35,944 bases of DNA, taken from NCBI RefSeq assembly GCF_001194135.2, contig NC_068986.1:77820668-77856611 (forward strand), written 5' to 3'. Origin of the DNA: Octopus bimaculoides. Lineage: Eukaryota. Both the position numbers and the translations under genes were made by a program. The notes under the pieces are model-generated. The model saw nothing but the letters and a program-made list of their open reading frames with translations, made no database searches and was not told the origin of the DNA. Every line of letters starts with the position of its first letter. The first letter of the stretch is position 1. Shown here one piece after another: positions 9,739 to 35,373 of this stretch.

Positions 9739-10051
9739 CTGAAAGGTTGTTATAAATGCCCAGAGAAGGGAATCAAAGTTAGCTCTTTTGCAGTGACAAC
9801 TAAGTTTGCTGGTAGCAGGTTTCCAATTTTGTAGTGATGGGAATGTAGTAGTGGTAGTAGTAGTACTAGTAGAATTAGTAGTAGAATTAATAATGTTGGT
9901 GACAGTTGTGGTAATATTGTTGTTGTTGTTATTGGTGGTGAAGATTGGAATAGCAGTGGTACTAGTAGTGGTGTTGATGGTGTAAATGGGTTCATCGTTC
10001 TGCTGATGACCTTCACAGAATTTGCCGCCGAAAAAACACATGCCTAAAACA
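9739..10051 (-). CDS. Cav3: Internal coding exon of Cav3, domain II S5/turret/P-helix, exon 12b-like, with long Thr/Asn-rich turret
   Basis: Translates (S)VLGMCFFGGKFC-[72 aa]-CHCKRANFDSLLWAFITTFQ. The GGxFC and RANFDSLLW motifs are 12b-type. Acceptor is ctttattttatctccccacctgcatgtag|T and donor is CAG|gtaacc. Length is 313 nt, phase 2 to phase 0, and the frame is open throughout. Confidence 0.92.
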
Positions 10052-10054
10052 CTA

Positions 10055-10060
10055 CATGCA
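10055..10060 (-). promoter_or_regulatory. UGCAUG motif immediately upstream of the 12b-like acceptor
   Basis: The gene strand reads cc-TGCATG-TAG|exon. Function is inferred. Confidence 0.4.
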
Positions 10061-10372
10061 GGTGGGGAGATAAAATAAAGTGACACAGTTGGCAAACTTG
10101 GGTAAAGAACAGTTCTAGTATTAATGGTTACAAATCTTCTGACTACATTGTTAGACAACAACTACAATGGCAGGTGAGGTTGAAGAGAGAATTAGTTATT
10201 ACATAAAACTGGTAACATGGAGAATACATATATATATGTGTGTGTATATATATATAAATATATATATATATATGTAGATACAATTATACACTTATATACA
10301 TATATATACATATTATATAAAATAAAATCTTGGCTGATGCATTAATGCGCTGCAGTTCTTGCAACAGCTGCT

Positions 10373-10552
10373 NNNNNNNNNNNNNNNNNNNNNNNNNNNN
10401 NNNNNNNNNNNNNNNNNNNNNNNNNNNNNNNNNNNNNNNNNNNNNNNNNNNNNNNNNNNNNNNNNNNNNNNNNNNNNNNNNNNNNNNNNNNNNNNNNNNN
10501 NNNNNNNNNNNNNNNNNNNNNNNNNNNNNNNNNNNNNNNNNNNNNNNNNNNN
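10373..10552. other. Assembly gap (N)
   Basis: Run of N. The other gaps are 17554-17650, 21802-22640, 22919-22928, 23580-24055, 25237-25578 and 28692-28730. Confidence 1.
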
Positions 10553-10776
10553 TATATATATATATATATATGTATGTATATACATATGTATGTATATACA
10601 TATATATGTATATACATATATATATACATACATATATATATATATACATACATATAAATATATATATATATATGTAGATACAATTATACACTTATATACA
10701 TATATATACATATTATATAAAATAAAATCTTGGCTGATGCATTAATGCGCTGCAGTTCTTGCAACAGCTGCTACTT

Positions 10777-10792
10777 AATGATGGTGATGATA

Positions 10793-10840
<48 letters not shown>

Positions 10841-10985
10841 GATGATGATGCTGATAAAGCGCATGGAATTATTGCAGATGACAATAAAGAGAGCAAGATA
10901 CAGAAAACATTGCCTCCCAGATTGATGCCAGTAAGCAACAGAACTCTACTAGCGAAAGCAATGTCAATGTAAATGTTGTTGTTGT

Positions 10986-11035
<50 letters not shown>

Positions 11036-11052
11036 ATGATGATGATGATGAT
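10777..11052. repeat. Two (GAT)n arrays flanking a unique ~120-bp spacer
   Basis: (GAT)n runs at about 10777-10850 and 10987-11052. On the gene strand they read (UCA)n. Confidence 0.9.
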
Positions 11053-11329
11053 CTTGTGAGTTGTTGACTGTGATAATATTGCTGGAAACTTAGGACAAAA
11101 TGCAGTTGCAAGGCAAGATATTTAGCTGCACAATTAGATCTACTCATTAACCTTTTCACTGCTGTAACATAATGTACCACAAATCAAGAGATTTTACTTT
11201 TAAATTCTGTCAAGTTAATATATATTTTAGCATAGGGACACTGGTGCATGGACAATAACAAATTAGAATTCTTTAAAAAAACGTTGGGTCAAACAGTATA
11301 CATTCTCTCTTATATTTTAACAATCTTAA

Positions 11330-11577
11330 CCCATTGATACTAATCCTTTATATTTCCATATGATGAAATCAGCCTCTGGTTCCTTCATACAGACCTTATA
11401 TGATCTTAATTTAAAAATCTTCCATCATATTTTTATATAATACTCTTTTGTTACATTCCAAATATTAGCTTCATAGTGAAAAAGTTATTTATTTTATTAA
11501 ATACATCCAAATTCATAATTATTTTCAAAATTAATTGAAAAACAGTGTGTTTCATTAGAAATATATCCATGAAAGGG
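11330..11577. mobile_element. TTAA-flanked MITE (piggyBac-like termini)
   Basis: Structure is TTAA (11326-11329) CCCATTGATA ... CCATGAAAGGG TTAA (11578-11581), with imperfect short terminal inverted repeats. Confidence 0.6.
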
Positions 11578-11795
11578 TTAAAGAGATATTACAAGACATA
11601 ACTAGTTTCATGTCTACGAAAATATTAACACGCATGTTAGTTCTAGCTACTGAATGATTTATCAATTACATAATTTAAATTATGTAGTGATATAAGACTA
11701 TTCCTTCCTTCTTGCTTAATGTTCATAAATTAAGGTTGATTAAAGTCATATATTGAAAATGAAATATAAATCAACTGTCAGTTGACCCTTCATCA

Positions 11796-12010
11796 CTCTT
11801 TTACTCTTTTACTTGTTTCAATCATTTGACTGCGGCCATCCAGGAACATCGTCTTTAGTCGAACAAATCGACCCCAGGATTTATTCTTTGTAAGCCTAGC
11901 ACTTATTCAATCAGTCTATTTTGCTGAACTGCTAAGTTACAGGGACGTAAACACACCAACATCGGTTGTCAAGTAATGGCGGGAGGACAGACACAGATAG
12001 ACGAACACAT

Positions 12011-12062
<52 letters not shown>

Positions 12063-12224
12063 GATGGGCTTCTTTCAGTTTCCATCTACCAAATCCACTC
12101 ACAAGGCTTTGGTTGGCCTGAGGCTATAGTAGAAGACATTTGCCCAAGATGCCATGCAGTGGAATTGAACCTGGAACCATGTGATTGGGAAGCATGCTTC
12201 TTACCACACAGTCACTCCTGTGCC
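11796..12224 (-). mobile_element. SINE family A, full length, with internal (TA)n/(CA)n
   Basis: Complete reverse copy with tail ctcttttactcttttacttgtttca, 3' domain, microsatellite and tRNA-like head ending cttaccacacagtcactcctgtgcc. Confidence 0.9.
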
Positions 12225-12311
12225 ACTCACTGTCACTCATATTTCATAAACTCTGTAGTCTTATCTTTTGACTAAATGAAAGCTCTGAAGAAACAACAAT
12301 TATATGTTTGG

Positions 12312-12447
12312 TGGTGAGATGGCTGAGTCATTAGAGTGTCTGGTAGAACGACTCATAGAATTTGTTCTGACGCTCTGCGCCTTGAGTTCAAATCTTATCA
12401 ATGTCAACTGAGATTTTATCCTCTTAGGATCAATAAAAAATGAACCA
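12312..12447 (+). mobile_element. SINE family B, degraded partial
   Basis: Contains ggtgagatggctgagtcattag..ttgagttcaaat..tcaactgagattttatcctc..atcaataaaa. Confidence 0.55.
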
Positions 12448-12977
12448 ATTCAGTGTAGGAGATTGGCAAAACTATAAGGATATAACCTTGCAGTATTTGT
12501 TTCAACACTCTATGTATCTTGAGTTCAAACCCCATCATGGCCTATAGGGAGGGTTTATTTAATCCGTTACCTAGTTTAACTCCACAATGTGGCAACTTGG
12601 GTGACTTTAGCAGAGTCCACTCAGTTGCAAGAGACACCTAGTTTGTGGATATAACGCTATCTCCTTTCCACCAGTTTCATTGACCCTGTCATGGGGCAAG
12701 GGTACTGCCTTCTATCTTGATTAAAAAATGAAAAATAGAAAACTAAGCTTGAGAAGGTTAAGTTCCTTGAGCAAAATGAAATAGTTTTATTACCTCACAG
12801 AAAGAAGAAAACCTTTATATGTGAGCCTACTTCAATTTTTACCTACTGAAATTATATATATATATATATATATATATCATGTGATCATGTGACCGACCAG
12901 GCTGTCAGATGTCACACCTCACTGGTCACAATGTGCTTTTGCAGCATTGTTTTTGCTGAAATTATATATATATATAT

Positions 12978-13022
12978 CATCATCATCATTTAACATCTGC
13001 CTTCCATGCTGGCATGGGTGGA
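12978..13022 (-). mobile_element. Family C 3' tail fragment
   Basis: The sequence (CAT)n-ttaacatctgccttccatgctggcatggg is the reverse of the family C terminus. Confidence 0.7.
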
Positions 13023-13193
13023 ACTATTCTAGGAGTACATATATTAGTTTTTAAATTTGGTTTCATGTAGCTTAAAGTTTTGTAGGTTCGTCACTCAAAC
13101 CTAGCGGCTCAAGCCTAGGTGAGCAAATATATATATATATATATACAATGTGTGTGTATGCTTATATATATATATATACAATGTGTGTGTATG

Positions 13194-13255
<62 letters not shown>

Positions 13256-15456
13256 TAAGAAGGGTATTGGATTCAACCAAACCCAAAGATACAGGTAATA
13301 CCGAGTAAGTGCTGTATACCGGCTAGTTCTGCCCCATTCGTTGTATATAGATTAATTTTAATATTCTTAGAAAGACAAAACAAAGGCATTCATATATCTG
13401 TGTAACTTCTCTTTTGCATATATATCTGAGAAAAAAACTCAGTGAAGTCTTATTCATTAATATATGTGCCAAACCATTATGATTGCATTTTATGTTTGTA
13501 GGTTTAGGTACATTGCATAACATGCTTGGTATAGTGAGGCACTGCAATGCTTGCAGCAAAATTTGAATGCATCCTTATTCTTTTTAATCACTTAACTACA
13601 ACAGATAAATATCAGGTTAACTGAGTTGTAAGTCAACTCAAAAGAAAAAATCAATATCTCTTGAAATTAAGAGTAAAATATAGCTTGGCAGAAAACAAGG
13701 TGAAGTTATAAATATTCTAGTTAATTTTATACTTGAAAATGTGAACACAGGGAAAAAATTTTGAAGAATAATGAATTATCTAAAATAACTTTAAACAACA
13801 CATAATAATTGACTTATAAATGTTAATTGAAGTATTATCATGGAATAATTACTGTATATGAACGCTAACCAAGAAAAATACCAAGTCTTACAAGGCCAAA
13901 TCATGTCTAGGGTTGTCATGTTAACACCAACAGACTCACTCCCCACTGCATTGTACATGCATTTTACATTTAATTAATTTTGATTAATTTAAATTCTAAG
14001 ATTGTTTACCTTGCTTTTTCTTATTCAGAATTTATAATTAAGATAATGCTGGTTTCTAATATCATTAAGAGTGTAATAATTTTAATTAATCATTTTTTTT
14101 TTACTACATCAAGTATATTACTGCCCATTTTATTATTTGTTTTATGCAGCAGAAATTTCTGGGAATACTTCTTTAGTCATTTTAGAAATATTATTCTGTT
14201 AGTCCTTGTCATCTTTTTTGAAAAGTGGCAATGTTCTATCATGAAAAACACTATAGTATCCATTTACAAGATATTTCCCTAGAATTTTGTATACAAAGAA
14301 ATGAAGTTGCAGAACAATCCTATCTATGTTATCAGAGAAAAAAAATTGCTTTTAGAATGACAAAAATAGCTATATTATTTGTCTTAGAATGATAGAAGAT
14401 TATATATTTCATAATTCATATTCTAAAGATAAAATAAATGTTGAAACATTAAAGATATTTGAACTGTTTCCCCTACTGAAATTCTCATTAGAGAATTGAT
14501 AATGGTTAAAATATGAAGAAACAATGGGAATTCAGGTAGCAGTGGTGGTGGTAGTGGTGGTGGTGGTGGTGGTGGTGCAGGGGATGTTTGGGAAAATAAA
14601 CATTTGGTACAGCATTGGAAAAGTTAATGTGGTTCAAGAACAATGCAATGGTGCATGCTACTACTGAAGTAGATGCAAATAAATAGTACTTCCTGGCGGC
14701 CTGTATTGGAAAGCTAAAACAATTTGCATTACTAAGATTCTAAGACATGCATTACAAGAAATGGGTGGAGGGTGAAAAAAAAATTAATGCAAAATTGAAA
14801 GGAAAAAAAAGTTAATTAAATTTCTGAAAAATAAATGTTTTCCTATTTCATTTTATTATTATTAATTTTTTTTTATTTTTGAAGGAAAGTTAGTTGATAA
14901 ATGCAACAAAAGAAATTAAGAAATTAAACTTTGCCAAAAGCGCTGCCAAGATCAGAAGACATTGCCACACTTCAGAGCATTTCAGAGTAATGTAGATATA
15001 ATTTTTTTTAAAAGGATGATGGTTTGTTTTTGGCCCCCAAACTGAGAGTTTATCATAGGAGAAAATAGAACATAGATGTATTTTTTGTCCCCCATATAAA
15101 ATTTAATTGAGTCAACTATTCAACTTTCCATGCTCATAGATACAAATAAATGAATTGTCATTCCTGTTGATTTCAGAAGATTGGTGATCAGATTTATGAC
15201 ATTTATCCCTATCCGAAAGGCATTTGTGGAACAAATTAAAAATAGAAAGGGAAACTACTTCTAAGAACCAAACCTATTTTGTAGGTTCAGTTTTTCAGAA
15301 ACTTACCACTTGTACTTCAACCTTTGTTACAGAGAGAAAGAAAAAATTATTGGTTGATGATTCATTTACACTGCTTTTGTATCTGGCTTGCAAGATTCTT
15401 TATGAGAATTTGTGTGTTGAAACAAATTTTGTTGTGTCTGGAGAGTCCTATTGCCA

Positions 15457-15460
<4 letters not shown>

Positions 15461-15503
<43 letters not shown>

Positions 15504-15576
15504 CACATATACACACACACATGCACACATACATATGCACATACAGACACACACACAAATACACACAGACACACAC

Positions 15577-15660
<84 letters not shown>

Positions 15661-15675
15661 AGAGAGAGAGAGGGA
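15461..15675. repeat. Compound (TA)n-(CA)n-(GA)n microsatellite
   Basis: Directly visible. Confidence 0.95.
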
Positions 15676-16348
15676 GGTAGATTTAGGGCTGTGACATAGA
15701 TCAAGAAACAGTCATATATTTTATTTAGTTTAATCAACTAAGGAAGTAGATATCAATTGATATTCACAATTTATGAGAGATTGTTTGGGGATTGAAGAAA
15801 AAAATAAACATGCACTTTGGTTTGCGAAGTCAATTCATGACAGCATGTGTGTACGTGTGTGTGTGTGTGAGTGCACATATGTGTGTATGTATCAGTATGA
15901 TTGTCAGGATATATGGATATAAATAAATATTTATCGCCTTTAACTGTTAAAATTATGTATTAAAGTATTAAATAAATCTTATGAAAAGTAAACAAGTAGA
16001 ATATGTTCAAGCTAAATTAAACTCAACGATTTTAGTTGTTTTGGCGCCCTTACATTTTTCTAAACCAAGTTTCATGTGCTGTCCTCACTTCTTATCCCAT
16101 CAATTATACATTTTTACTTTCCACAAGTTTGAGAAGAGTAAAGAAGTTTTCTATACACTAAATTTTTCCAAACATTCTATGTTTACTAAGCAAAAAATAG
16201 CTAAACACAATTAAACTGAATTTCTTTAAGCACAATGGCCGTTGTGTTTTGGTACAGAATTTAATCTATCACATGCTCAAAACAGAAAATATACCGTCTT
16301 AAAAATGAACATAATGGAAATAAAAATCAGTCCTGTTTATATTATACT

Positions 16349-16382
<34 letters not shown>

Positions 16383-17413
16383 AGGTGGAATGGTTCTGGT
16401 TGAAATCATGTTTGAATGAGAAGAAAATAAAATAGATCAACTCTGAACATGAAGCTCAGCTAAACACAATCTCAATTGAGGAATATTTATATATGTGGTG
16501 TGTTGGATCTGTGAATCAGGTTTTACTTGGACAACACAACAGAAACAATTACAGAACAGCTGCTGCCATCAATATTATAAATGAAATACAATCTGCAATA
16601 TATGACTTACAAAACACTTCTCTTCTTACTATCATAAAGAATCCACCTCCAGTTTTCACTAGTTGGCTTCAAAGGTCAGATCCACTCTAATCGACATTAT
16701 CTATACTCTTTAAAAATTTCATGCAACTGATCTTATAGGAATTATCTCCCCTGTCTGTTGCTTCTATATACCAAGCACTTTTAGAAGAAATTTTTGTTTA
16801 CAAATTGCTTTGATAACCTCAATTTACTGAAGTTTTTCTGACTGTCTATATTACTTCATATGTGAGACCCTATTATATTTGTAATTAATATGCAGAACAC
16901 TCCCCTGAGGTATTTTTCTTCAACCGTATTTATGAGGCAGAAACTTCAATACTAAAACAATAAATATACAAGTGAAAAGTGAACAGAGCAGTCAAATACA
17001 TATTCCCTCCAAGCATTATGAATGAAAACTAAAAGAGTAATTAGTCTATGAATTAATTTTTTTCTTGAAGAACATTACTGTTCTATCTATGTTACCTTAC
17101 TACTTCAGAGCTGCTCATAGTTTCTATGTAATTATAGCAATCTCTTCTTATGAAGAAAATGTAATTATAGAGGCCAATTACTAATGAGTAAAATGTAATT
17201 ATTATGGTTACCAATAAAGCTGCTTGCTTTCCCCAAAGTCAAGAAAAAATTGTTACACAAGTAATTCTGATGGTTAAAAAAGGAAAAATACAAATATTAA
17301 GAAGTATGGAGAAAGATATCTTAGAATGGTTATTTCTGAAAATATCTGTAAAGCATGATATATATGGATATAGATATGTATCTATGTATAAATACATGCA
17401 CACACACACACAC

Positions 17414-17460
<47 letters not shown>

Positions 17461-18119
17461 TATGTATATATATGAAATTATATATACATGTATACTTGCA
17501 TATCATAATAGCCACATAATTCATAATTCTATGAATCCATATATTACATTACANNNNNNNNNNNNNNNNNNNNNNNNNNNNNNNNNNNNNNNNNNNNNNN
17601 NNNNNNNNNNNNNNNNNNNNNNNNNNNNNNNNNNNNNNNNNNNNNNNNNNTATATATGTATATATATATATATAGCTATAAATATATCATCACCATCACT
17701 ATCGTTTTTACATCCACTTTTCCTTTCTTGCATGGGTCAGACAACATTTTGTTGATTTTCTTCCTATCACAGACGTTCCTCTGTTTCCAAGCAAAGAAAT
17801 ATTTCTCCTAGACTTTTGAACATGAACACCACAAATTGCTGAATATTTTTTCATTGAAAGTTACAAACAAATGATACTGCTTATATGACTGAAATTTGTT
17901 TACAACTGGTGCACAATATCAAGACAAGAACACCTAGACATATGCAAATGCGTATGTGTGTATATATATACATGTATATATATATAAAATACAAAAATGG
18001 GACAAGAATGCAAAACATCTTGACAGTTAGGTGATACAAAAAAGGGACAACAAAACATCCAGACAGACGATACAAAGAAAACAAGGATGGGTCATTCGGA
18101 GTTTTCTATTCTATCGAGT

Positions 18120-18560
18120 TCCAGATTATCTTTGCAATTTTGGCTGGTTATTCTCTAGATTGCTCCAATCTGGCCAGCACCAAGGAAAAACTAAGCGAAG
18201 AGCATTAGATTCCTTGAACTGGATTTACCTTGGATTTTAACTAAAGACCTGTACCTTTATGGAAGTACCAACCAACATCCATATCCTCTGGGAAAAGATG
18301 AGTTGTGAACATTATTCTCCTGCCTGTATTCTTCTAACTACATTTACTCTTTATTCCTTTATTTTACTCCTTTATTCTTCTAATTTATTCCTTATAAACT
18401 GTAAATTTCCCCCCGTCTAAAACATTCATACCTTGTCTCTGATGATGGAATACCCAGTGCATGGACACATGCTAAGTTGCCACTTGGATTATCCCAGAAA
18501 CAGCTGTAAGACTTCAAACTGAATTATTCTAAATGACTTGTGAAACTTGTTCTGCCTTGG
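18120..18560 (+). mobile_element. Probable Penelope-like element 3' remnant
   Basis: Decayed reading frames (KRRALDSL.., TGFTLDFN*RPV) resemble the end of a GIY-YIG ORF and are followed by a hammerhead motif of the type associated with PLEs. The family assignment is inference. Confidence 0.5.
18435..18512 (+). ncRNA. Type I hammerhead ribozyme motif with minimal palindromic stem III
   Basis: The motif reads GTCT (18435-38), CTGATGA (18439-45), stem II TGGAATA..TATCCCA (18446-52/18490-96), GAAA (18497-500), C-AGCT-G, TA (predicted cleavage after 18508) and AGAC (18509-12, pairing with GTCT). Confidence 0.75.
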
Positions 18561-19430
18561 TTTTGATTTTTCCTCTAATATAATATAATATAATATAATA
18601 TAATATAACACACACACACATATATGCATGTATGTATGTATGTATGTATGTGTATATATATATGTGTGTATATTATATGTACATATATATTTATATGTAA
18701 GTGTATATGTCACTTTCTTATTGCTTCATATTTCTCCTTTTCCCTCTCCCTCTTCACATTATCTTCTTTAAGTAATTAACATCCCATTCTGACATTTCTA
18801 CTATGGCACCTTTCTTCAACTTTATTACGATATAATGAAAATATTTATAATCTAAGAACTATCTGAAACCACCCCATAAATCCATTTATACAGATAAGGA
18901 ACTGACTTTCTAAAAATGAAACCAGATTCTGCCTCGGTTAAGTTATTTGTAGAAGACTACTTGACCAATTTCTATTTTGACTCCCCTTGTCACCGTTGAA
19001 AGGTACAAATTTTTTTCCAGTTTCTCTTGGTAAATTCATTATGGCAAAGAAGCTTTAACTGACAGGTGGAAAGTAGCTGATGAGGAAGAACTCTGAGTAA
19101 TTAAGTAGCACCTTAAAGTTACAGAATATGCGTTCAGTGCTCCCTTTGAAACAAGTGTAGTACATTACTGCCCATTCCATTCCTTTCATTCATGGACTTA
19201 ATTGCATAATTAACAACTTTTGTTGCTATATACTGGAGTTGTATAGAAGTAGTCATCTCATTGGAATATATAGCTAATTTTCAGATGGGACCAAGTGCAT
19301 TGGCTACAGTGGTTAATAAACTTTATTGGTTGCTTATTATCTCCTCTTGTGTTATCTATATGTGCCCTGTCTATTCCAGAGGCTAACCAACTGTTTTTAC
19401 CACAAACATTTGGCTCTCACTATTATTTTA

Positions 19431-19482
<52 letters not shown>

Positions 19483-19554
19483 ATTATGTCGTGTTTCAGA
19501 AGAAGATCCATCAGGCTGAGCAAAATTGCAGTTGTGGTAGATACTGGTATCACA

Positions 19555-19697
19555 TACCGGTGGCACATAAACGTGCCTCAGTGTCATGCAAATGGCACCT
19601 GTGCTGGTGACATGTAAAAGCACCCATCACACTCTCAGAGTGGTGGGCATTAGGAAGGGCATCTAGCCATAGATGATGATGATGGTGATGATGATGG

Positions 19698-19738
<41 letters not shown>
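19555..19738 (+). mobile_element. Retroposon family C copy, internally shortened, with (GAT)n tail
   Basis: The segment catgtaaaagcacccatcacactctcagagtggtgggcattaggaagggcatctagc is followed by a long (GAT)n run. Confidence 0.8.
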
Positions 19739-19742
<4 letters not shown>

Positions 19743-20429
19743 GGATTTTCCCATCTCTGTCAATCGAATTAACTCATAAACCTACCAAATCTTAAGTCAA
19801 CTTTTGGCTATAGTAGACGACACTAGCACAAGATGCAATGCAAAGGAATTTAAGACAAAACCATGAGGTTATGAAGTAAATGTCTTATCAACACAACATA
19901 TATATGTGTGCATATGTATGTTGACATACACATGCACACATGTAGTTTACCACATACAGTTTTATTATGTACAAACACACACATGTCCACACATGATTTT
20001 AAGATTGACCCTGGCTCCATCCCCACTTTCTGTGGCTTTCCACACAAACATCAATACCATCCTACACTCACCTCAGCCCCAACCCCACTCTACAGTTATT
20101 TACCTCATACCCTCTGATGAAACTTTCTGATCTCTATCCAAGGGGAATGAGTCTAATGAACAAATGTTTCCTCACTAGGTTTTTGTAGTCCAGATTTTTA
20201 TGAATCTGTAAACTGGCTGTGACACTGTCTTACCTCTGATAGCAAGAAGCTGTGTCTACTTTTCCATCCCTTCTGCTGAGTGCTGAGATTGGTTTACCCA
20301 AAATCTCATGTACAAAACCACATGATAAAAATCACCTGAAATGGGTCTATATTACTGTCTCTTCTTTCTCTTTCACTCTGTCTGTCTGCCTGTCTGTCTC
20401 TCTCTGTCTCTCTCTGTATCTCTCTCTGG

Positions 20430-20918: not shown

Positions 20919-20923
20919 ATATA

Positions 20924-22918: not shown

Positions 22919-22928
22919 NNNNNNNNNN

Positions 22929-22972
<44 letters not shown>

Positions 22973-22989
22973 CATAATGTGTGTATATA

Positions 22990-24055: not shown

Positions 24056-24085
<30 letters not shown>

Positions 24086-24086
<1 letters not shown>

Positions 24087-24910: not shown

Positions 24911-25008
24911 ATATAATATATTCATTGAAGAAATACCTATTCAAAATGTATTAGACTAGTGTAACTTGAATAAAATATCCCTATAAGAGATTTAAATATT
25001 CTCATTGT

Positions 25009-25051
<43 letters not shown>

Positions 25052-25171
25052 AAGGTTTGGAGGTGACGTACAGAAATTATATAGAAAAAAATTAATTAAG
25101 GTACTCAGAAACCTGGATGTTTGTACATTTACAGATTTTTATTAATGTCACATATTAAATGAAGTGCTTTT

Positions 25172-25236
25172 CACCTAGTCGTGTAGGTTTTTCAAATTGT
25201 TTTGAAAACAATTTGAAAAACCTACACGACTAGGTG
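25172..25236. repeat. Perfect palindrome, 32-bp arms, 1-nt spacer, abutting a gap
   Basis: The sequence is cacctagtcgtgtaggtttttcaaattgtttt-g-aaaacaatttgaaaaacctacacgactaggtg. Confidence 0.95.
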
Positions 25237-25578
25237 NNNNNNNNNNNNNNNNNNNNNNNNNNNNNNNNNNNNNNNNNNNNNNNNNNNNNNNNNNNNNNNN
25301 NNNNNNNNNNNNNNNNNNNNNNNNNNNNNNNNNNNNNNNNNNNNNNNNNNNNNNNNNNNNNNNNNNNNNNNNNNNNNNNNNNNNNNNNNNNNNNNNNNNN
25401 NNNNNNNNNNNNNNNNNNNNNNNNNNNNNNNNNNNNNNNNNNNNNNNNNNNNNNNNNNNNNNNNNNNNNNNNNNNNNNNNNNNNNNNNNNNNNNNNNNNN
25501 NNNNNNNNNNNNNNNNNNNNNNNNNNNNNNNNNNNNNNNNNNNNNNNNNNNNNNNNNNNNNNNNNNNNNNNNNNNNNN

Positions 25579-25613
<35 letters not shown>

Positions 25614-26168
25614 TACACTTATCAACATGTATGCACCATGCACACACTCTACTGGGACAGATACAGTGTAGATATGTAACATAACTACATGACAATAAAT
25701 GCATCCAATTATGGAAACTTGTCATTAATGAATGAGCTGATGTTTTGCTACAAATATTTCTAGGTCATCCTTGTGTACATTGTACTATATATAAACCTCA
25801 TTTAACAAAATTACTGTAAACCATAATTGAAGTCCTTGGAGCATTTTCTCAATTCTCTATGATGCCATTTGTTTTCTGACACCAAATGTGATCTATATTT
25901 GCCATTCTCTTGCATTACATCTCTGTCTGAAGGCTGAATATTTGCAGGGAAACCAAATGAGTCCTCTCCTATATTATTTTCTTTAGGCATTGTTTTCTGG
26001 ATATGACTGATTGAGTTTTTCTTAATGGTGTGTAAACAATGTGAGAAAACAGTCACTAATAAATATAGCTTAATAATAAGAAATGCAGAGGCGAGTTGAC
26101 TAGTTTACAAAAAATATATTTCTAAGCTACAGAGAAATAGAAGTCTAGAAGATATTTGGTGAAGCATA

Positions 26169-26559
26169 TCTTTTATCTTTTATCTTTTATCCTTTGCTTG
26201 TTTCAGTCATTAGACTGTGGCCATACTGGGGCACCACTTTGAAGAATTCATAGTCGAATGTATTGACCCCACTACTTTTTTTTGAAAGCTTGCTACTTAT
26301 TCCATTGATTTCTTTTACTGAACTGCTAATGTATGGGGACATAAATACACAAACACGCAGTGGAAGGGAGGAGGGCAAACACAGACACACAAACACACAC
26401 ACACACACATGATGGGCTTCTTTCAGTTTTCATCTACCAAATCCACTCACAAGGCTTTGGTTGGCCCAAAGCTATAGTAGAAGACACTTGCAGTGGGATT
26501 GAAACCAGAACTATGTGGTTGGGAAGCAAGTTTCTTACCACACAGCCATGCCTGCACCT
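26169..26559 (-). mobile_element. SINE family A, full length
   Basis: Reverse copy with (tcttttat)n tail, internal (CA)n and head cttaccacacagccatgcctgcacc. Confidence 0.9.
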
Positions 26560-26835
26560 ATATATTTTAAGAATATAAGATGACAGAATAAAACAAAACT
26601 TTCTCAAAACATAAAGTTTCATGTTGAGCCAATGAGGTTACTTTTATGTGTCTACATGATTTTCTAGAAATAGCAACTAAATCTTCTTCAAAACTTACTA
26701 TTATTGCATGGAAATACCATTGTCTATTGTAGTCCTTAATATACAAAAGATATGTTTGCTATGTTCTTTGATTGTAAATTTGTTTGATCAGAGCTGACTT
26801 CGAGCTGAAGGAGAAGATGGAGGAGGAGAAGGAGG

Positions 26836-27136
26836 AAGAAGTTAACAAAAATAATAACTAATGTCTTGAGAAATGAGCCCTGCAAGGTGGAATGGCTGCT
26901 GCAGCGAGTGTTGCCAGTCATTCTCCATGGCAACACCATTGTGGCCATTATGAGGCACGGCTGAGCACATTATTTGTTCGAGGGTGTGGGCCCATTTCCC
27001 CCTCCACTTTTATATTCTGTTGCTATAACCCTCTTTTTTCTTGTTTTTTCTTTTTCATCTTACCTTTTTTTCTGTTTTTTTTTGTATTTAAATGTTATAA
27101 TTTAAATTGTAATCTGCTGTGATTTGTAAAAATAAA
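26836..27136 (+). mobile_element. Possible CRE-like (RLE) non-LTR retrotransposon 3' end
   Basis: Bases 26836-26964 read KKLTKIITNVLRNEPCKVEWLLQRVLPVILHGNTIVAIMRHG*, resembling the CRE-type terminal motif GEPR...FLLQRLSVAIQRGNA. A T-rich tract and AATAAA at 27131 follow. Confidence 0.5.
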
Positions 27137-27407
27137 GCATTTTTAGTAATTATTTTACAAAGTGGATTTTGCTAAAGGCATCAAAGTTGCTAAGATGATG
27201 GATTAAGTCTACTGGCCAAGTATAACATGGTAAATTCTGAACTCAGAATGCAATGAGCCAGAAAAATAATGCAAAGCAGCAGATGTGATATTTTTACCAT
27301 TCTGTTAATCCACCATCCAAGATTAGTGCTATTTTATTGCCCCTCGAAAGGGTGAAAAGCAGAATTGATATGAACTCAGAGTATAAGAGAATTAGAAGAA
27401 ATATTAA

Positions 27408-27615
27408 TTTCAAATTTTGGCACAAGGCCAGCAAAACATGAGGGGATAAGTTAATTACATCAACCGCAGTGTTCAACTAGTACCTATTCTGTCGACTCCA
27501 AAAGAATGAAAGGCAAAGTCAACCTCAGCAGGATTTGAACTCAGAATGTAAAACCAGATGAAATGCTGCTAAATATTTTGCCTTGCATGCTAACGATTCT
27601 GCCAGCTCACTACCT
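27408..27615 (-). mobile_element. SINE family B, full length
   Basis: Contains tttcaaattttggcacaaggccagcaa..gaatgaaaggcaaagtcaacctc..tttgaactcagaa..gctaacgattctgccagctc. Confidence 0.85.
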
Positions 27616-27726
27616 GAGAAGTGGAAGAAATATTGTGAATCATTTTATCCAATGCTCCATCATCTCTGCCAAATGTAAAAAGCCAAGACAAATGCTAATC
27701 ATGGGCATGGAATTATACTAATTAAA

Positions 27727-28139
27727 AGTGGGTGGGTGATAAGAAGTTTGCCTCCCAACCACATGATTTCAGGTTCAGTCTCACTGTGTGGGACCTTGAG
27801 CAAAAGTCTTCTACTATAGACACAGGCTGACTAAAGCCTTGTGAGTAGATTTGGTAGGTGGAAACTGAAAGAAGCCCATAGTATACATGTGTGTGTGTGC
27901 ATGTATGTATGTATGTGTGTGCATGCATGTGTGCCTTTGTGTTTGTGCCTGTCTTTCCACTGCTTGACAACCACTTTATTTTCTTGTAACTTAATAGTTT
28001 GGCAAAAGAGACTGATAGAATGTGTACCAGTCTTTAAAAAATGAGTAACAGGGTTCATTTGTTTGACTATAACTTTTTAAAGTGGTACCAAAGCATGCCT
28101 GCAGTCAAATGTTTAAGACAAATAAAAGAGGATAAAAGA
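27727..28139 (+). mobile_element. SINE family A, full length
   Basis: Head aagaagtttgcctcccaaccacatgatttcaggttcagtc, internal (TG)/(TATG)n, 3' domain and taaaagag tail. Confidence 0.85.
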
Positions 28140-28419
28140 AAATATGTGGAAAACTAAACAACTAAATCTAAGTTTCATTATCATAGCCAATTATTTGGGT
28201 TAAGCATGAAAGAAATCAATATGTTGTAGGTAAATCCTGCCTTATTTCATTTGAACTTTAAACCTAGCACTCCATTAATGCTATAGAGTTAAAGGCTGAT
28301 AGGATTATAGATAAACATAAAATGTTGCTTGAATTTTAAGGCCAATGAGATTTAGAGAGATATTAATTGAACATGTTTTGTTGGCAACACTAAATGGCAT
28401 TCAACTTTCAGATAATAAA

Positions 28420-28626
28420 TTACACGCATGCACACACACACACGTTTATGCATATCATCATCAATAACATCCATTTTCTATGCGGGCATGGGTTATATAT
28501 ATGTATGCATGTATGTATGTATGTATGTATGTATGTATGTATGTGTGTATGTATATATACACACACACGCGCATCCATATATATACATACAAACACATGC
28601 AGATATAGATATGTGTGTGTGTATGT

Positions 28627-28680
<54 letters not shown>

Positions 28681-28735
28681 ATATATATGTANNNNNNNNN
28701 NNNNNNNNNNNNNNNNNNNNNNNNNNNNNNATATA
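28420..28735. repeat. Compound (CA)n/(TATG)n/(TG)n/(TA)n microsatellite, with a gap
   Basis: Directly visible. Confidence 0.9.
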
Positions 28736-29514
28736 TAATTGGCATTAGAATTTACCAAGATTGCATTCAATTTGGCAATTAATTTGGACCAGATCTCATT
28801 TAATATATGATTTGGCATACCTATCTATCTCACATTACCGACAGTGCATGTTTTTGGTTGTATTAATTGATTGTTATTTCCTATTCTTACTATTTTAGTC
28901 TTGAAGGGGTTAATCTGTGCATTTATGATTATAACAAATATTTCATGTATTTTCTTGCAATTAATTTTCTAAAACAAAGTATGGAAACACATACTCTCAC
29001 AGACACACAGTTACACACGTATCCTACATAGATTCACATACATAGACACTATCATAAGCTCATTGACATTTACACTTTTGTACAAACAAATATTCAAGGA
29101 AAATCAGCCAACACATGAAAAACTGATGAATATGATGTTTTTATGTTTTATGTGTGTAATTTTAATTGCCTCGATTTACAATGAGTTGTGTACTTAATTC
29201 TCCAAGCCTACTACTTAGCAATAGTTGCTTGTAAATTAAGAAACATTGCTCCTTAACTTAACTTTCTCAGAATTCTAATTAAATGTAAATAATTTGAAAT
29301 TATATTTATTGAGAGCAGCAGAAAGTGGATTCACCCAGGAGCAGCAGGTTGAAGCACAGGTTGCTTTGATGACATTTTATATCTAATGGATTATATTTGC
29401 ATTGGTGCCCCCTTATCATTTTATTCAGTCTTACTTTTCTTCTCACCTGGAATGTGTCCTTGTCTTTTTCATATGGAGCTTCATTCTGAATTACTACTTT
29501 CCTAGATGGGTCAT

Positions 29515-29836
29515 TGTGAAGGCATGTGGATTAGTGGTTAGGGTACTTGGCTCACGATTGTAAAATTGTGAGTTCAATTTCCAGTGACACATTGTGTCCT
29601 TCAGCAAGTTACTTTATTTCACATTGCTCCAGTCCACTCAACTGGCAAAAACGAGTAGTACCTGTATTTTAAAGGGCCAGCCTTGTTACACTCTGTGTCA
29701 CACTGAATCTCCTTGATAACTACATTAAAGGTACACATGTCTGTGGCATCCTCAGACACTTGCATGTTAATTTCACGAGCAAGCTATTCCACTGATCGGA
29801 TCATCTGGAACTCTCACCATCATAACCGACAGAGTG
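29515..29836 (+). mobile_element. tRNA-derived SINE family D (single copy here)
   Basis: Contains an A-box-like tggattagtgg and a B-box-like gagttcaattt, followed by tgtgtccttcagcaagttacttta..ttgctccagtccactcaactgg, which resembles a CORE-like central domain. Confidence 0.65.
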
Positions 29837-29958
29837 AGATGGGTTGTCTTCACAATAACTCATGTTTCTTCACAATGCTGTGAAGGCTGCTCATTGTGTG
29901 ATGATAGGAATGGAGAGAAAATCTATGTTAGGTTGGTGTATTTGTTTGGAGTGTTTAA

Positions 29959-30177
29959 CCCTTTAGCATTCAAACTGGGCACAATTAGCCTAAATATCCT
30001 ACCTGTCTAATGTTCAAACCAGCCAGATGCAACCTGTCACACCTACCCTACAATGTCCGTCTAAAAAGAAGCAATCACATCATGAAAATCTCAAAGCTAT
30101 GAGATAATGCATGATTAATTCAAAACAATGTGAATAAATAAGCATTACAGTTGATGAGTAATCTGAAGGATATAGGG
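29959..30177. mobile_element. TTAA-flanked MITE (piggyBac-like termini)
   Basis: Structure is TTAA (29955-58) CCCTTTAGCATTCA ... CTGAAGGATATAGGG TTAA (30178-81). A related partial copy lies at 273-358. Confidence 0.7.
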
Positions 30178-30638
30178 TTAAGTTTCTTGATATGCAGGGG
30201 AAGTAATTTGCTTTAGACATAGGGTAATTAGAATCAAAATAGATTGCACACTTATTATGATAGGGGAGCTTACATTTCATTGATAGATTAGGTTGCAAGT
30301 GATATTTATTATGTAAGGTGAAGCAGAAATGGTGAGAAATCTCACGCTTCTGATTAGATGTACTTGCCAAACAGAGTTTAATGAAACTTATCAGCAGACT
30401 GAAAGGAGAGATATAAGAGAAAGAAGAAAAGAGAAAGATATCTATGTCAAAGACAAAGGTCTGTAGGTAGGCAATAACCAGAAACCAATAAGTGCAGGAC
30501 TAATAAATATTATACAAATAAAGACAATAATTAATGGTTGTAAAACTAATGGTAGTACTTGTAATTGTTAGCGTAACACTTACCCAATTTCTGCATTACA
30601 AGAGTTAGATAGATAGGTAGAAAAAGAGGGAGAGAGAG

Positions 30639-30846
30639 AGGGGGAAGAAAGGGAGAGAGAGAAAGAGAGAAGACATAGTGGAGAGAGAGAGTGGGGGCAG
30701 ATATTGAGATGTAAGAAGAAAGAAGTAAAAATATAAAAATTAGGGGGAAGAAAGGGAGAGAGAGAACGAGAGAAGACATAGTGGAGAGAGAGAGAGTGGG
30801 AGTAGATATTGAGATGTAAGAAGAAAGAAGTAAAAATATAAAAATT
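30639..30846. repeat. Tandem duplication, two units of about 104 bp, purine-rich
   Basis: Unit 30639-30741 is nearly identical to 30742-30846 (agggggaagaaagggagaga...agacatagtggagagag...gatattgagatgtaagaagaaagaagtaaaaatataaaaatt). Confidence 0.9.
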
Positions 30847-32288
30847 ACAATAGGATCCACTTTAAACCTTAAAAAGAAGGATAAGAGAGAGAAAGAATGA
30901 GAGAGAAAGGAGTAAGATATGCATATCTACATGTGTTTATATGTGTATGTGTGCACTTGTGTGTGCTTGTGTGTGTGTGAGTGCAAGAGAGAAAGAGAAA
31001 GAAAGAGAGAGACTGTGTATATAGACGCATACATTCATGTGCAAGTGTGCGCACATGTGCACACACATACACATGCAAACACACACATGTACACATGCAA
31101 ATACATAAATGCAAAAGTGTAATTTTCTCTGTGAAAGAGATTCAGGGCAAGGATAAATGGTTAGGAATATATGCCAAAGAAGTGTGATAAACGCATTCAG
31201 ACCATGACAGAATAGTTTTGGAAGTTAAAGATATGATTTAATTATTTTATTTTTTTTTTTTTGTTACCATAAGCTGAAAAGAATTTACACTTTTATTGAT
31301 TAAACATATGATGATTAATTCTACTACTTAAATATTGGTCAGCTTTTTTAGCCACACCGTAATACACCTATAATGCAAATTTGATTGTTAATCAAGTTAT
31401 GTCTGACATACATGTCAAACTTTGAAGAATTAGTTAAACTGAGAAAATATATAATAGAATAATTTTTGCATGAGAAAACCTTTAAACAGACAATAGCCAT
31501 AATAGAATAAATTTTTAGAACATAAAGGATAAAATTGCATATGATATATTCAGAGTGGCACGCTATAGTTTTGGTGATCTCAAAACTGTTAGTAAATATC
31601 TAAATAAATGCCTAAATATTTGTCTATTTGTCCGTATGTAAGTTGTTGTATCAATACTGTTCGTAGAATAAAAAGATATGTTGGTAGCTTAGATGGTAGA
31701 AAAAAATAAAGTGTTATTGAAACAAATTAAGAATGAGAAAAATATTAATGTTCTACTATGAAACGACATAAGAGAGGAATTTTTATGATAATTAAATAAT
31801 AAAAATGACAAAGTTGAGTGGGTAGCATATGATCAAAATCTGGGTTTGCAACTATAAAACAATAATTCATTTTTCTATACTATAAGATATGAAATTCATT
31901 ATTATGGAGACAGAAGTGAAAAAAAAAAACAAAAAAAAAAACAAACAAAACATAAAAAACAAAGAAATGAAAACCAAACTCAGTTAATATGCTGTAATAT
32001 AAAAATAGGTATAAATATCAAAGAAATTCAATTCCATTCTTAATGACATGCATTCTAGCTACTTTAAAAACTGGTAAATTTTGTAAGATACCAATTTACG
32101 TGGGCAGGCAGCAGACGTTCTCAATTTTGTATGAATGATTGGGATTGTGTGAATGTTCAGAATGCTCATATCATTTCAAAGGAGTTTAAGAGTAATTGAA
32201 AGGGCTGAGATTGGGAATTTAAATTGGATTGCTGAAACAGAATGCTAAAAATCTTACTTCTATAATTGTCATAGCTTTATACAATATT

Positions 32289-32491
32289 GGTTTCAAATTG
32301 TGGCACAAGGCCAGCAATTTTGGGGGAGGTGATATTGGTTACATCAACCCCAGTGCTCAAATATTTTACTGGCCCTGAAAGCATGAAAGGCAAAGTTGAC
32401 ATGGGCTGAAACTGAACCCAGAATGTAATGACAGCTAAAATACCACTTAGCACTTTGCCCAGTATGCTAATGATTCTACCAGCTCTTCCCC
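32289..32491 (-). mobile_element. SINE family B, full length
   Basis: Contains ggtttcaaattgtggcacaaggccagcaattttggggg..gcatgaaaggcaaagttgac..tgctaatgattctaccagctc. Confidence 0.85.
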
Positions 32492-32635
32492 TTATAGTTT
32501 TATACAATATTAAAACAGGCGTTAAGGTTTTGAGAAAGTTGAATTTATGAAAGAAATTTACATATATTTTTTAATATCTACTATTATTTGTATTTACATT
32601 TCTTAACATAAGCCTTAGAGGAACAGAAATGGGAA

Positions 32636-32709
32636 TTTGTATTGTTCATTCTTTGATCACATTGACCACTGATCACATTTGTATTGTTCATTCTTTGATC
32701 ACATTGACC
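32636..32709. repeat. Direct repeat of 32 bp, period 42
   Basis: tttgtattgttcattctttgatcacattgacc occurs at 32636-32667 and again at 32678-32709. Confidence 0.9.
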
Positions 32710-33887
32710 CCTGTGTTTGACTGGTATTTTATTTTGTTGACTTTGTAAGAATGAAATACAAAATCTATCTCTGTTGGATTTGAATTCAGTCGCATTTTCA
32801 TTTGATGTTCTACTATATCTGTCTATCCATGTATTAGTAATGTAAATGAAGTGCTCACAAGTGTGAATCAGGAATTTTTTTGGAGTTGATTAGTAAAAGC
32901 CCTGTTATATCACTGTACTCTATACATATATATATGAATAAATATGAACAAGTGAGATATTGCAGATCTGTCAAATGGAGTGTTTTTCAAATTTGATTTA
33001 TATCTCTAAAAATGTTCAACTCTATTTTTTAATTAGGAAATTATAAAATCAAAACCAACAATACCAACAACTTCATTTGTCTATACAAAAACCAAATTTT
33101 GAGATAAATGAACAGACTTTTAACTGCTTCAACTTCAGTATATTATTAATAATTAGTAGGTGATTTCAATAGAAATTACCTGAATTTGAACTCAGAATCC
33201 TGTGGTATCAAATTTAGAATTCTATATCAGGTGTTTAAATCTCTACTGATTTTCTTCTTCACTACCGCTCTAACACCAAAAATAACAATGATAAAATCTC
33301 TATTTATATATAATTATAAACATAGAGACACATATACAGACATATATGTGTGCACTCACATATACATATATTTGTTAATAAAAAGATGTCTGGCATGTTA
33401 GTGACTATAAAGCGTGAGATGTCTACTTAGATTTCTGTCAGACAGATATGCTATTGAAAATCAGTTTTCTATGAAGAAAATGAAGAAGAAGAAGGAAATA
33501 AAAAGCAACCAACAAAAATACCCCAAAACTCAGACTTGTTGTTGCTGTTGAAGTTGTTTCATTTATATGTGGCACAGTATCAGTCTAAAAACACCTTGTT
33601 ATAGACAGTGAGTCTTGTACAAAGGGATATTTGTCTTCTAGCAAGAAGAAAACAAAGTTTAAAACACTTATTCCCACCGAAATGACCAGTTCAAGAATGA
33701 AGTATGCTCTAAGAAAACGAGCAATGAATAAGGCTTATGTCAGTTGCAGACTTATAGTACACAAGAAAACAGTCTTTCTCTCTGACATTATTTATATTTT
33801 CTCTGTAATGAAGAGAGAGATAAAAAAACCACCTTCTTTTCAAAAAAACAAATATAAAATCAGTTCTATGTGAAATTTTAATAGCCT

Positions 33888-34279
33888 GGCACACGCATGG
33901 CTGCATGGTTAAGAAGTTTACTTTGCAATCATGTGGCTTCAGGTTCAGTTCCATTGCACAGCAATGTCTTCTACTATTAGTACCAAGCTAACCAAATCCT
34001 TGAGAGTCGATTTTGTAGATGGAGACTGTGTGAGAGCTCATTGTATATGTATTGAGTGTTTGCACCTGTGTTTGTCCTTAAGCACTGCTTAGCAGCCAGT
34101 GTTAGTTTGTTTACTTCCCAGTAACTTAACAGTTCAGCAAAAAAGGCTGATAGAATAAATGCCATCATACTTGGTCATAATTTTAAAATACAAAAATTAG
34201 TGTTGATCTGTTTGACTAAAAATCCTTGAAGACATTGCTCCAGCATGGACACAGCCCAATGATTAAAACAAGTAAAAAC
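33888..34279 (+). mobile_element. SINE family A, full length, degraded
   Basis: Contains gcatggctgcatggttaagaagttt..ggttcagttcc..cttctactat..gatagaataa..gctccagcatgg..aaacaagtaaaa. Confidence 0.8.
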
Positions 34280-35206
34280 AATAATTAAAATATGGTTGGT
34301 ATGCATATTAGACGTGTTGCTCTACAGTTTTAATTTTGTATTCCATTGCAGGCCTTTCATGCTTTACAGACAAATATTTTCACTACTTGTTTGACTTTAC
34401 ATCACTGAATCTTTAAGTGAAACTAATTATAATTGACAGTCGATAGTTAAGTTGCTTATTAAGTTGAGAATATGTCAAGGTAGGAGAAAGAGAGAGAGAG
34501 AGAGGGAAAGAGAGAGAGAGAGGGAAAGAGAGAGAGGGAGAGAGAGAGATCAGAACACAGACTAACTCTGGCAGATCCTTGAAACCCATGTAAATATTTT
34601 ATTTAAAGTGGTTCACTGACATCATTTCCCCAGAATTTTTAGCTTGATGTTGTTGAGTATTAAAAATTAGCTAAGATACTGCAGATATGATTAAGCAAAT
34701 GTTTTCGAGCTTAGGTATATGATTGCCTTAGATCCAGATTACAAATTTGCTTTATGTCTCTATATGTATATTCAAAGAATTGTGTTAAGTGGGTATGGCA
34801 AGTTAATAGATAGATAGATTTTTGATTCTTGAGGAAGCAGTTAAATTATTACTTAGCAAGTAGGAGAGATTAGTAAGTTATGTAAACAAGCTAGTTGGTA
34901 AATTAGAACTAAGTTTGAAGGTGACAAAGTGTAAACGACTAAGAAAAGGTAGGGACATCAAAGTATACCAGAGATTTCAGCAATAGTAGCAGCTATTCTA
35001 GGCAACAGAAAAAAAAAATGTGAGTATATATATTTACATATATATATATACATATGTATATAAGTGTGTGTATATATACATATAGATACATATACACACA
35101 CATCTACATACATATATGTGTGGATGGATGTGTTGACACATGGATTCTGTAAGTTTGAGTTGTGAGTAAAGTAAGGCAAGGATAATGTAAACTACGTATA
35201 TACTAT

Positions 35207-35212
35207 CATGCA
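35207..35212 (-). promoter_or_regulatory. UGCAUG (Rbfox-type) motif about 20 nt downstream of the 12a-like donor
   Basis: Plus-strand catgca reads TGCATG on the gene strand, in non-microsatellite context. Function is inferred. Confidence 0.45.
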
Positions 35213-35231
35213 GTGGGTTGAGATACGATAC

Positions 35232-35373
35232 CTGAAACACAGTAAGGATTGACCAGAGTAAGGAGTCGAAATTCTTTCGACTACAGTTGTGGTGGGCATA
35301 TGAGTACGTCTGCGTGGACATTATCCTTTTCTGGCCACAAAATTTACACCCAAATAAGTTCATTCCAAGGATG
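35232..35373 (-). CDS. Cav3: Internal coding exon of a T-type Ca channel (Cav3), domain II S5/turret/P-helix, exon 12a-like (tri-cysteine)
   Basis: Translates (S)[47 protein letters not shown], matching the Cav3 DII signatures SILGMxLFGCKF and [16 protein letters not shown]. Acceptor is gtgttttgcttcag|C, with a CTAAT branch-like motif at 35390-35394. Donor is CAG|gtatcg. Length is 142 nt, phase 2 to phase 0. Confidence 0.95.

Follow-up and report, generated by a model that had tools for sequence, protein, structure and literature searches.

A stretch of 35,944 nucleotides (nt) from Octopus bimaculoides (contig NC_068986.1, positions 77,820,668 to 77,856,611), hereafter referred to as the window, carries two alternative versions of exon 12 of a Cav3 (T-type) channel gene, designated 12a and 12b. 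Taken as a whole, the data are probably best explained by a single Cav3 gene with mutually exclusive use of exons 12a and 12b, by which the Na+/Ca2+ selectivity of the pore would be switched, and with a choice between the exons that is hypothesised to be made by an Rbfox-type factor. The exon pair is of the kind published for protostome Cav3 genes and is not a new system; new here, and uncertain, are a 12b exon that is doubled in length, cysteine-poor and glycan-rich, the possible control by Rbfox, and the failure in several taxa of the rule that 12a carries Lys and 12b a neutral residue.

The positions of both exons and of the features within and around them are collected in Table 1. The original prediction of two minus-strand exons of 142 and 313 nt with equal phase and lengths of 1 mod 3 was confirmed exactly by the sequence and by the AG/GT splice sites, which read ...ttgcttcag/C (acceptor) and CAG/gtatcg (donor) for 12a and ...tgcatgtag/T and CAG/gtaacc for 12b. 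The first base of both exons is the last position of a codon split by the preceding intron, and both end at a codon boundary. The 12a peptide consists of the (S) from the split codon and 47 residues with three cysteines (GCKFC...NC). The 12b peptide reads (S)VLGMCFFGGKFCEGHQQ...KLSCHCKRANFDSLLWAFITTFQ and is composed of (S)VLGMCFFGGKFCEGHQQNDEPIY, a Thr/Asn-rich segment of 46 amino acids (aa) and FPSLQNWKPATSKLSCHCKRANFDSLLWAFITTFQ. When the window was searched by tblastn, the two peptides found each other with E values of 2.5e-6 for the C-terminal block and 0.01 for the N-terminal block, and no third comparable match was obtained in a permissive tblastn search of the window; the likeness of 12a and 12b is therefore beyond chance. 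The predicted order, with the GCKFC/RKNF exon upstream of the GGKFC/RANF exon, was borne out as well and is also present in locus L001, a 20.5-kb N-free part of a contig (617 kb) from a related species, in which 12a (1701-1842) and 12b (9991-10231) lie on one strand, 8,148 nt apart.

Table 1. Positions in the window of the two exons, the intron between them and the features discussed in the text.
Feature	Position	Strand	Length	Description
Exon 12a	35373..35232	minus	142 nt = 47 codons + 1 leading base	short turret, CxxC...C tri-cysteine, RKNFD
Exon 12b	10051..9739	minus	313 nt = 104 codons + 1 leading base	long turret, GGKFC...CHC, RANFD
Intron 12a-12b	10052..35231	minus	25,180 nt	includes 7 assembly gaps (1,983 N); microsatellites, SINE-like repeats
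Lys codon (aag) of RKNFD, 12a	35274..35276	minus		position of Lymnaea K1067, sodium-permeant state
Ala codon (gct) of RANFD, 12b	9781..9783	minus		position of Lymnaea A1078, calcium-preferring state
Thr/Asn-rich low-complexity insert in 12b	9844..9981	minus		aa 24-69; replaces the region of the canonical central CxC
Variable base, 12a codon 21	35311..35311	minus		CAG/CGG (Gln/Arg) in RNA contigs
UGCAUG 3' of 12a	35207..35212	minus		begins at +20 after 12a, within the sole conserved intronic block there
UGCAUG before 12b acceptor	10055..10060	minus		offset -9..-4

The peptide encoded by exons 11, 12a and 13 found its best matches in the PDB in the domain II S5-P1 segments of human Cav3.2, Cav3.3 and Cav3.1 (E 7e-24 to 7e-22), as against E values of about 1e-9 to 1e-6 for Cav1/Cav2 and above 1e-3 for Nav/NALCN. 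The start of exon 13 in the contigs, common to 12a and 12b, is GTTCTTACACAAGAAGATTGGAAC..., which is translated to VLTQEDWNTVL and contains the Cav3 domain II filter motif (LTQEDWN). By these sequence comparisons it is confirmed that both exons encode the domain II S5-P1 turret segment of a Cav3 (T-type) channel; the assignment of both to one segment of a T-type channel was upheld, with matches to Cav3 domain II far better than those to Cav1/Cav2. In the protein, exon 12 accounts for the last part of IIS5, for the extracellular turret and for the pore helix P1, just before the filter Glu-Asp of exon 13, and the window covers part of one invertebrate Cav3 gene on the minus strand with both mutually exclusive versions of exon 12.

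The splicing of both exons was read from assembled contigs of RNA runs aligned with each exon, whereby it has to be considered that rare forms are dropped from assembled contigs. Neither exon 11 nor exon 13 was found in the window by motif scans or by tblastn with generic exon-11 and exon-13 peptides; because both are located outside the window, their sequences are known solely from the loose ends of RNA contigs. The junction of exon 11 (…ACTACTTATTTTATTTATGTTTATATTCAG, …FMFIFS) to 12a was present in runs X14, X4, X7, X9, X27, X32, X39 and X40, and that of 12a to exon 13 (…CAG/GTTCTTACACAAGAAGATTGGAACACGGTCCT, Q·VLTQEDWNTVL) in X14, X4, X7, X9, X26, X32, X36, X39 and X40, with two contigs containing 12a reaching 7.7 kb. 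The junction of exon 11 to 12b, with an identical exon 11 end, was present in X14, X25 and X27, and the junction of 12b to exon 13, with an identical exon-13 30-mer, in X27. The whole 313-nt exon 12b including its insert is kept in spliced RNA with 0 mismatches, and spliced 12b was also observed in two closely related organisms, F and G. A joint between 12a and 12b was not present at any loose end of the assembled RNA contigs. If 12a and 12b were joined, a stop would follow 12 codons into 12b, and skipping of both would result in a frameshift; since both exons are 1 mod 3 in length, only 11-12a-13 or 11-12b-13 is translatable. Splicing of 12a and 12b is thus mutually exclusive, yielding 11-12a-13 or 11-12b-13, and the splicing of both exons to identical flanks agrees with the prediction of a single gene with one exon 11 and one exon 13.

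Usage of 12a versus 12b differs between samples of the organism of the window, by which the possibility that only one exon is used in all samples is contradicted. Given as contig word depth, a crude and poor measure of expression, and for samples with coded labels, values of 110 for 12a and 11 for 12b were obtained in run X14 (both spliced), of 3 and 5 in X27, of 7 and 3 in X26 (12b unspliced), and of 290-1080 (spliced) and 15-57 (unspliced) in X36, X39 and X40, and in X25 12b was present at a depth of 6 with no 12a.

That the two copies represent an assembly artefact or two tandem paralogous genes is considered extremely improbable. Such an explanation could draw on the seven assembly gaps between the copies, on the exact duplicates that flank two gaps and on the DNA-like run X35 of the organism of the window (~10x), which gave a full unspliced 12b contig and no 12a contig when 35205-35395 and 9722-10068 were inspected; the missing 12a contig is probably due to fragmentation in the contig set. 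The copies, however, differ strongly in sequence and length and are therefore not haplotigs, both are spliced to identical exon-11 and exon-13 sequences, and their order recurs in three unrelated loci. No channel exon was detected between them in the window, nor any other channel-like sequence between them in the gap-free L001, which contradicts an arrangement as tandem genes. None of the seven N runs touches either exon, all of them being located in the intron between 12a and 12b; the gap nearest to the exons (10373-10552) lies upstream of 12b and begins 322 nt from its first base, and RNA contigs cover 12a and 12b end to end with 0 mismatches. The seventh N run, 28692-28730 (39 nt), is intronic and absent from the gap list made by the program. 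Exact duplicates of 211 nt (22641-22851 and 23369-23579) and duplicates of 149 nt that are 95% alike (10224-10372 and 10624-10772) directly adjoin assembly gaps and look like artefacts of scaffolding or gap closing; therefore, neither the order of the sequence in this part of the intron nor its length is reliable, and the 25,180 nt given for the intron are approximate.

The exons 12a and 12b of LCav3 from Lymnaea stagnalis were reportedly the subject of Senatore et al. 2014 (J Biol Chem 289:11952). Exon 12 of this snail channel was further studied by Guan et al. 2020 (PMC7382465) and Guan et al. 2022 (PMC9694082). In Lymnaea, K1067 of 12a is predicted to form a salt bridge with the Asp following the domain II filter Glu, and A1078 is found there in 12b; the exchange K1067A turns 12a 12b-like, and the exchange of Ala to Lys makes 12b 12a-like and Na+-permeant (PMC9694082). 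The effect of Na+ was 15.6-fold for 12a versus 2.3-fold for 12b (PMC9694082), about 94% of the LCav3-12a current is carried by Na+ (PMC4436565), and 12a is the sole isoform in the heart (PMC9694082). Moreover, 12a slows all kinetics (PMC9694082), and without its turret cysteines the channel is more permeable to Na+ and altered in its divalent block (PMC7382465).

In the octopus peptide, the A in RANFD and the D in QEDWN are 20 residues apart, as are A1078 and D1098 in Lymnaea, so that R-K-NFD of 12a and R-A-NFD of 12b sit at the switch position; Lys in 12a and Ala in 12b are kept in both the window and L001. By extension of the snail experiments, the 12a Lys, held by the CxxC...C disulfide frame, would adjoin and neutralise the filter aspartate and give rise to a strongly Na+-permeant, slower channel. 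The 12b Ala would leave the aspartate charged and yield a more Ca2+-preferring channel. By this analogy, the retention of the Na+/Ca2+ selectivity switch in this animal can be regarded as well supported.

In order to compare the exon pair with other loci, a search with the 12a-isoform peptide was performed, which gave 116 fragments, and eight loci were fetched from other assemblies (nine loci including the window). About 100 of the 116 fragments represent exons of the 12a type, which have CxxC...C and RK and in which the loop measures 8-34 residues, so that the 17-residue loop of the window 12a is typical. A canonical 12a of 38-47 aa is present in all nine loci. An exon 12b was located downstream of 12a in five of the nine, with lengths of 104 aa in the window, 80 aa in L001, 70 aa in L002, about 74 aa in L007 (2468-2692) and 51 aa in L009 (9099-9251); every one of them is 1 mod 3, and an exon-13-like QEDW follows 12b wherever the locus reaches that far (L002, L007 and L009). 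The residue at the switch position of 12b is A in the window and in L001, E in L002, and K in L007 and L009. The canonical C...CxC...CxC frame is carried by the 12b exons of L007 and L009, and the window 12b is the longest among the five and the sole one without any central CxC. Homology searches with the full 12b peptide returned one match only, and those with the insert-free 12b core none.

In published protostome Cav3 genes, 12a comprises about 41 aa (38-46) with CxxC...C and 12b about 52 aa (48-55) with C...CxC...CxC, and both exons occur in most nematodes, arthropods, annelids and molluscs (PMC7382465, PMC4436565). Measured against this definition, the proposed class membership stood for the tri-cysteine 12a with Lys at the K1067 position, which with 47 aa exceeds the range by one residue, and for a downstream 12b with Ala; the length of 12b and its cysteine pattern do not agree with it, as 12b has 104 aa and four cysteines instead of 48-55 aa and the penta-cysteine frame. 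This exon is nevertheless downstream of 12a, longer, of equal phase, begins with FGG.FC and has a neutral residue in place of Lys, and it is, by position, phase and end sequences, orthologous to 12b, yet of a divergent form. Judging from the 12b exons of 70-75 aa in other taxa, the published range of 48-55 aa is too narrow.

The 46-aa Thr/Asn-rich segment of 12b is encoded by microsatellite-like ACT/ACC/AAC repeats. The exon contains 4 N-x-S/T sequons, about 30 Ser/Thr residues and many potential O-glycosylation sites. In L001, 12b (80 aa, 241 nt) has a shorter Thr-rich insert and has kept one central Cys. Between the window and L001 the ends of 12b differ by 11 synonymous versus 4 non-synonymous codons in 36 codons, and 12a by 9 synonymous versus 5 non-synonymous codons, which points to purifying selection on 12a and on the conserved ends of 12b. 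The middle of 12b is unalignable between the two, and both lengths (313 and 241 nt) stay 1 mod 3 despite the differing inserts. In close relatives, 12b differs from that of the window by in-frame indels of 3-6 nt, barring one contig of organism F. This spliced 12b contig (run X29, 329 nt) is net 13 nt shorter than the exon of the window and includes a 1-nt deletion at 9899; it would be out of frame if real, and may instead result from misassembly of the ACT repeats at a depth of 5x.

From the same features it could be argued that 12b is a decaying or 'poison-like' regulatory exon, in which the cysteine frame has been eroded by low-complexity expansion and the inclusion of which mainly lowers the output of functional 12a channels, as it is the minor or an unspliced form in most runs, retains four cysteines and no central CxC around its repeat-encoded Thr/Asn run, cannot be aligned with L001 in its middle and is possibly out of frame in organism F. 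This explanation is considered improbable, since transcripts from several runs and from two related organisms join 12b in frame to exons 11 and 13, X25 yields 12b contigs only, the ends of the exon are conserved with mostly synonymous change, a length of 1 mod 3 and the Ala are kept in both species, and other taxa have 12b exons that are also long (70-75 aa) and whose frames are intact. A functional, divergent 12b that is used as the alternative to 12a remains the preferred interpretation.

Regulation of the choice between 12a and 12b is not addressed in the literature searched. Incompatibility of frame, with nonsense-mediated decay (NMD) of the products, explains the exclusivity and not which exon is chosen. 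Steric hindrance as the cause of exclusivity is excluded by the intron size of 8-25 kb. Incompatibility of U2 and U12 splice sites is likewise excluded, the 12a donor GTATCG (GTATTG in L001) not being a U12 consensus and the donors being ordinary GT donors. Competing RNA structures were rejected, since intronic conservation between the window and L001 is confined to about 25-50 nt next to each splice site; the two conserved intronic blocks resemble each other and are not complementary.

A UGCAUG hexamer is located near either end of the intron between 12a and 12b (Table 1), and the pair recurs in L001 at 1860-1865 (+18 after 12a) and at 9982-9987, in front of 12b at the same offset of -9..-4 as in the window. 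The pair accords with the description of an Rbfox-regulated exon, for which (U)GCAUG is expected to be conserved in the adjacent introns at a distance of up to about 300 nt. The action of Rbfox depends on position, a site downstream of an exon enhancing the inclusion of that exon. UGCAUG is recognised by RBFOX/Fox-family proteins across metazoans, and in Caenorhabditis elegans RBFOX proteins repress the mutually exclusive egl-15 exon 5B from UGCAUG in the upstream intron (PMC3585155). An Rbfox-type factor would bind the hexamer downstream of 12a and enhance this exon, and the same factor would bind that in the 3' splice-site region of 12b and repress it, so that 12a would be on and 12b off. 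The UGCAUG pair suggests, as a candidate, Rbfox-type reciprocal control that accounts at least partly for the choice between 12a and 12b, and represents a first testable hypothesis for it. On the sense strand, the window has a UGCAUG background of about 1 per 1,000 nt, and L001 one of 1 per 2,300 nt. A third sense-strand UGCAUG (9693-9698), which begins at +41 after 12b, is not conserved in L001.

Several observations weigh against one or another part of this interpretation. With regard to selectivity, the Ca2+-preferring human Cav3.1-3.3 also read RKNFDSLLW, so that Lys alone is insufficient, and Lys is present in the 12b exons of L007 and L009 as well as in the penta-cysteine sequences P0063 and P0072 (with RK), while the tri-cysteine sequence P0051 carries Ala (RA). 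Judging from these sequences, Lys is decisive in the molluscan and nematode context and no universal predictor, and the Lys(12a)/neutral(12b) rule of molluscs and nematodes appears not to be general. The window 12b has four cysteines only (GMC, KFC, CHC) and may be less Ca2+-selective than that of the snail, because the central CxC is absent and the removal of turret cysteines raises Na+ permeability in Lymnaea. With regard to usage, the figures are contig word depths, which are poor expression measures, from samples of coded tissue. With regard to the choice of the exon, TGCATG occurs in the window at twice the shuffled expectation, the pair falls in generally conserved splice-site flanks, and it is conserved between the window and L001 only, as L002, L007 and L009 have no such pair near their exons 12a and 12b.

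It is further conceivable, though unlikely, that the exclusive switch is genuine and that its main output is not selectivity and instead concerns gating kinetics, sensitivity to redox or Zn2+/Ni2+, or glycosylation-dependent trafficking or surface shielding by a mucin-like 12b turret. The occurrence of Lys at the switch position in the Ca2+-preferring human Cav3 and in 12b of other taxa, the slowing of all kinetics by Lymnaea 12a and the effect of turret cysteines on divalent block (PMC9694082, PMC7382465), and the addition of four sequons and about 30 Ser/Thr to the extracellular turret would fit such an output. The K-versus-A contrast, however, is sufficient both ways in the snail and is preserved in the window and in L001, the 12a cysteine frame and the QEDWN filter are preserved too, and both outputs can coexist; a switch of selectivity is still preferred.

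A more specific proposal combines the divergent turret with the hexamer pair: in this lineage 12b would have lost its central cysteine pair and gained an expandable, heavily glycosylated, mucin-like Thr/Asn turret of a length that varies with the species (104 versus 80 aa for the exon), and a single Rbfox-type factor acting on the UGCAUG pair would enhance 12a from downstream and block the 12b acceptor. This combination is put forward tentatively and is rather improbable as a whole. If it were true, ion preference and an extracellular glycan shield would be toggled together by one neuronal/muscle splicing regulator.

Further observations were made on base 35311 in the turret loop of 12a and on the non-coding part of the window. 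The sense strand has G and not A at this base (Gln to Arg) in the RNA contigs of X26, X32 and X40, a proportion of ~50:50 was seen in X36, and A only was present in X14, X27 and X39. Adenosine-to-inosine (A-to-I) editing is unsupported here and a single-nucleotide polymorphism (SNP) is more likely, because the per-sample pattern of all T, ~50:50 and all C, known from RNA contigs only, resembles genotype classes. A dispersed element of ~230 nt, 70-94% alike and in both orientations (11985-12216 (+), 26411-26491 (+), 27727-27958 (-) and 3346-3479), is probably a repeat resembling short interspersed elements (SINE-like). A second repeat family is located at 5529-5619, 7688-7778 and 20613-20703; a search of the window against Rfam, repeat families included, gave no match. 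Long (ATC)n/(CCT)n microsatellites occupy 35400-35560, just upstream of the 12a acceptor region, and the poly-His/poly-Pro open reading frames found there are intronic artefacts and not coding.

Knowledge on 12a and 12b has so far rested mainly on one snail and one nematode, to which the locus adds a further animal in which all four junctions are directly documented by transcripts, and the exact exon coordinates are usable for isoform-specific quantification and cloning. The atypical 12b, in which the central CxC is missing, Ala is kept, the length is doubled and the insert is glycan-rich, offers a natural experiment on the turret cysteine frame. The lineage-restricted contrast of Lys versus a neutral residue limits the extension of the 'sodium T-type' inference from sequence alone.

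Among the known systems, Lymnaea LCav3 shares with the window the IIS5-turret-P1 segment ending with ...TVFQ before QEDWN, a short upstream 12a with CxxC...C and Lys, a longer downstream 12b with GGKFC and Ala 20 positions before the filter Asp, and exclusive use that varies between samples. The octopus 12b differs from it by its 104 aa versus the published 48-55, by four cysteines instead of five with no central CxC, by an additional Cys where S5 ends (GMCFFG) and by a Thr/Asn insert that is likely glycosylated; its 12a has 47 aa versus the published 38-46, the intron between the exons measures about 25 kb, and the system is here known from sequence and transcripts. The C. elegans gene cca-1 (CeCav3) also has two alternative turret exons, of which 12a carries Lys and 12b a neutral Met (PMC9694082), whereas the nematode 12b shows CxxC...C...CxC, has the Cys linking to the voltage sensor elsewhere and has no low-complexity insert. 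In the exclusive exons 5A/5B of egl-15 and 7a/7b of unc-32 from C. elegans, conserved UGCAUG motifs are likewise located in the flanking introns (PMC3585155); binding and function of RBFOX were demonstrated there, and the likeness of the octopus locus consists in motif position and conservation in two species. In the invertebrate four-domain channel NALCN, mutually exclusive domain II exons 15a/15b (EEEE versus EKEE) also toggle between Ca2+-like and Na+-like pores (PMC4436565), with the difference that the NALCN lysine is part of the selectivity filter itself, whereas in the Cav3 gene described here the filter, encoded by exon 13, does not vary and it is the turret that supplies the lysine.

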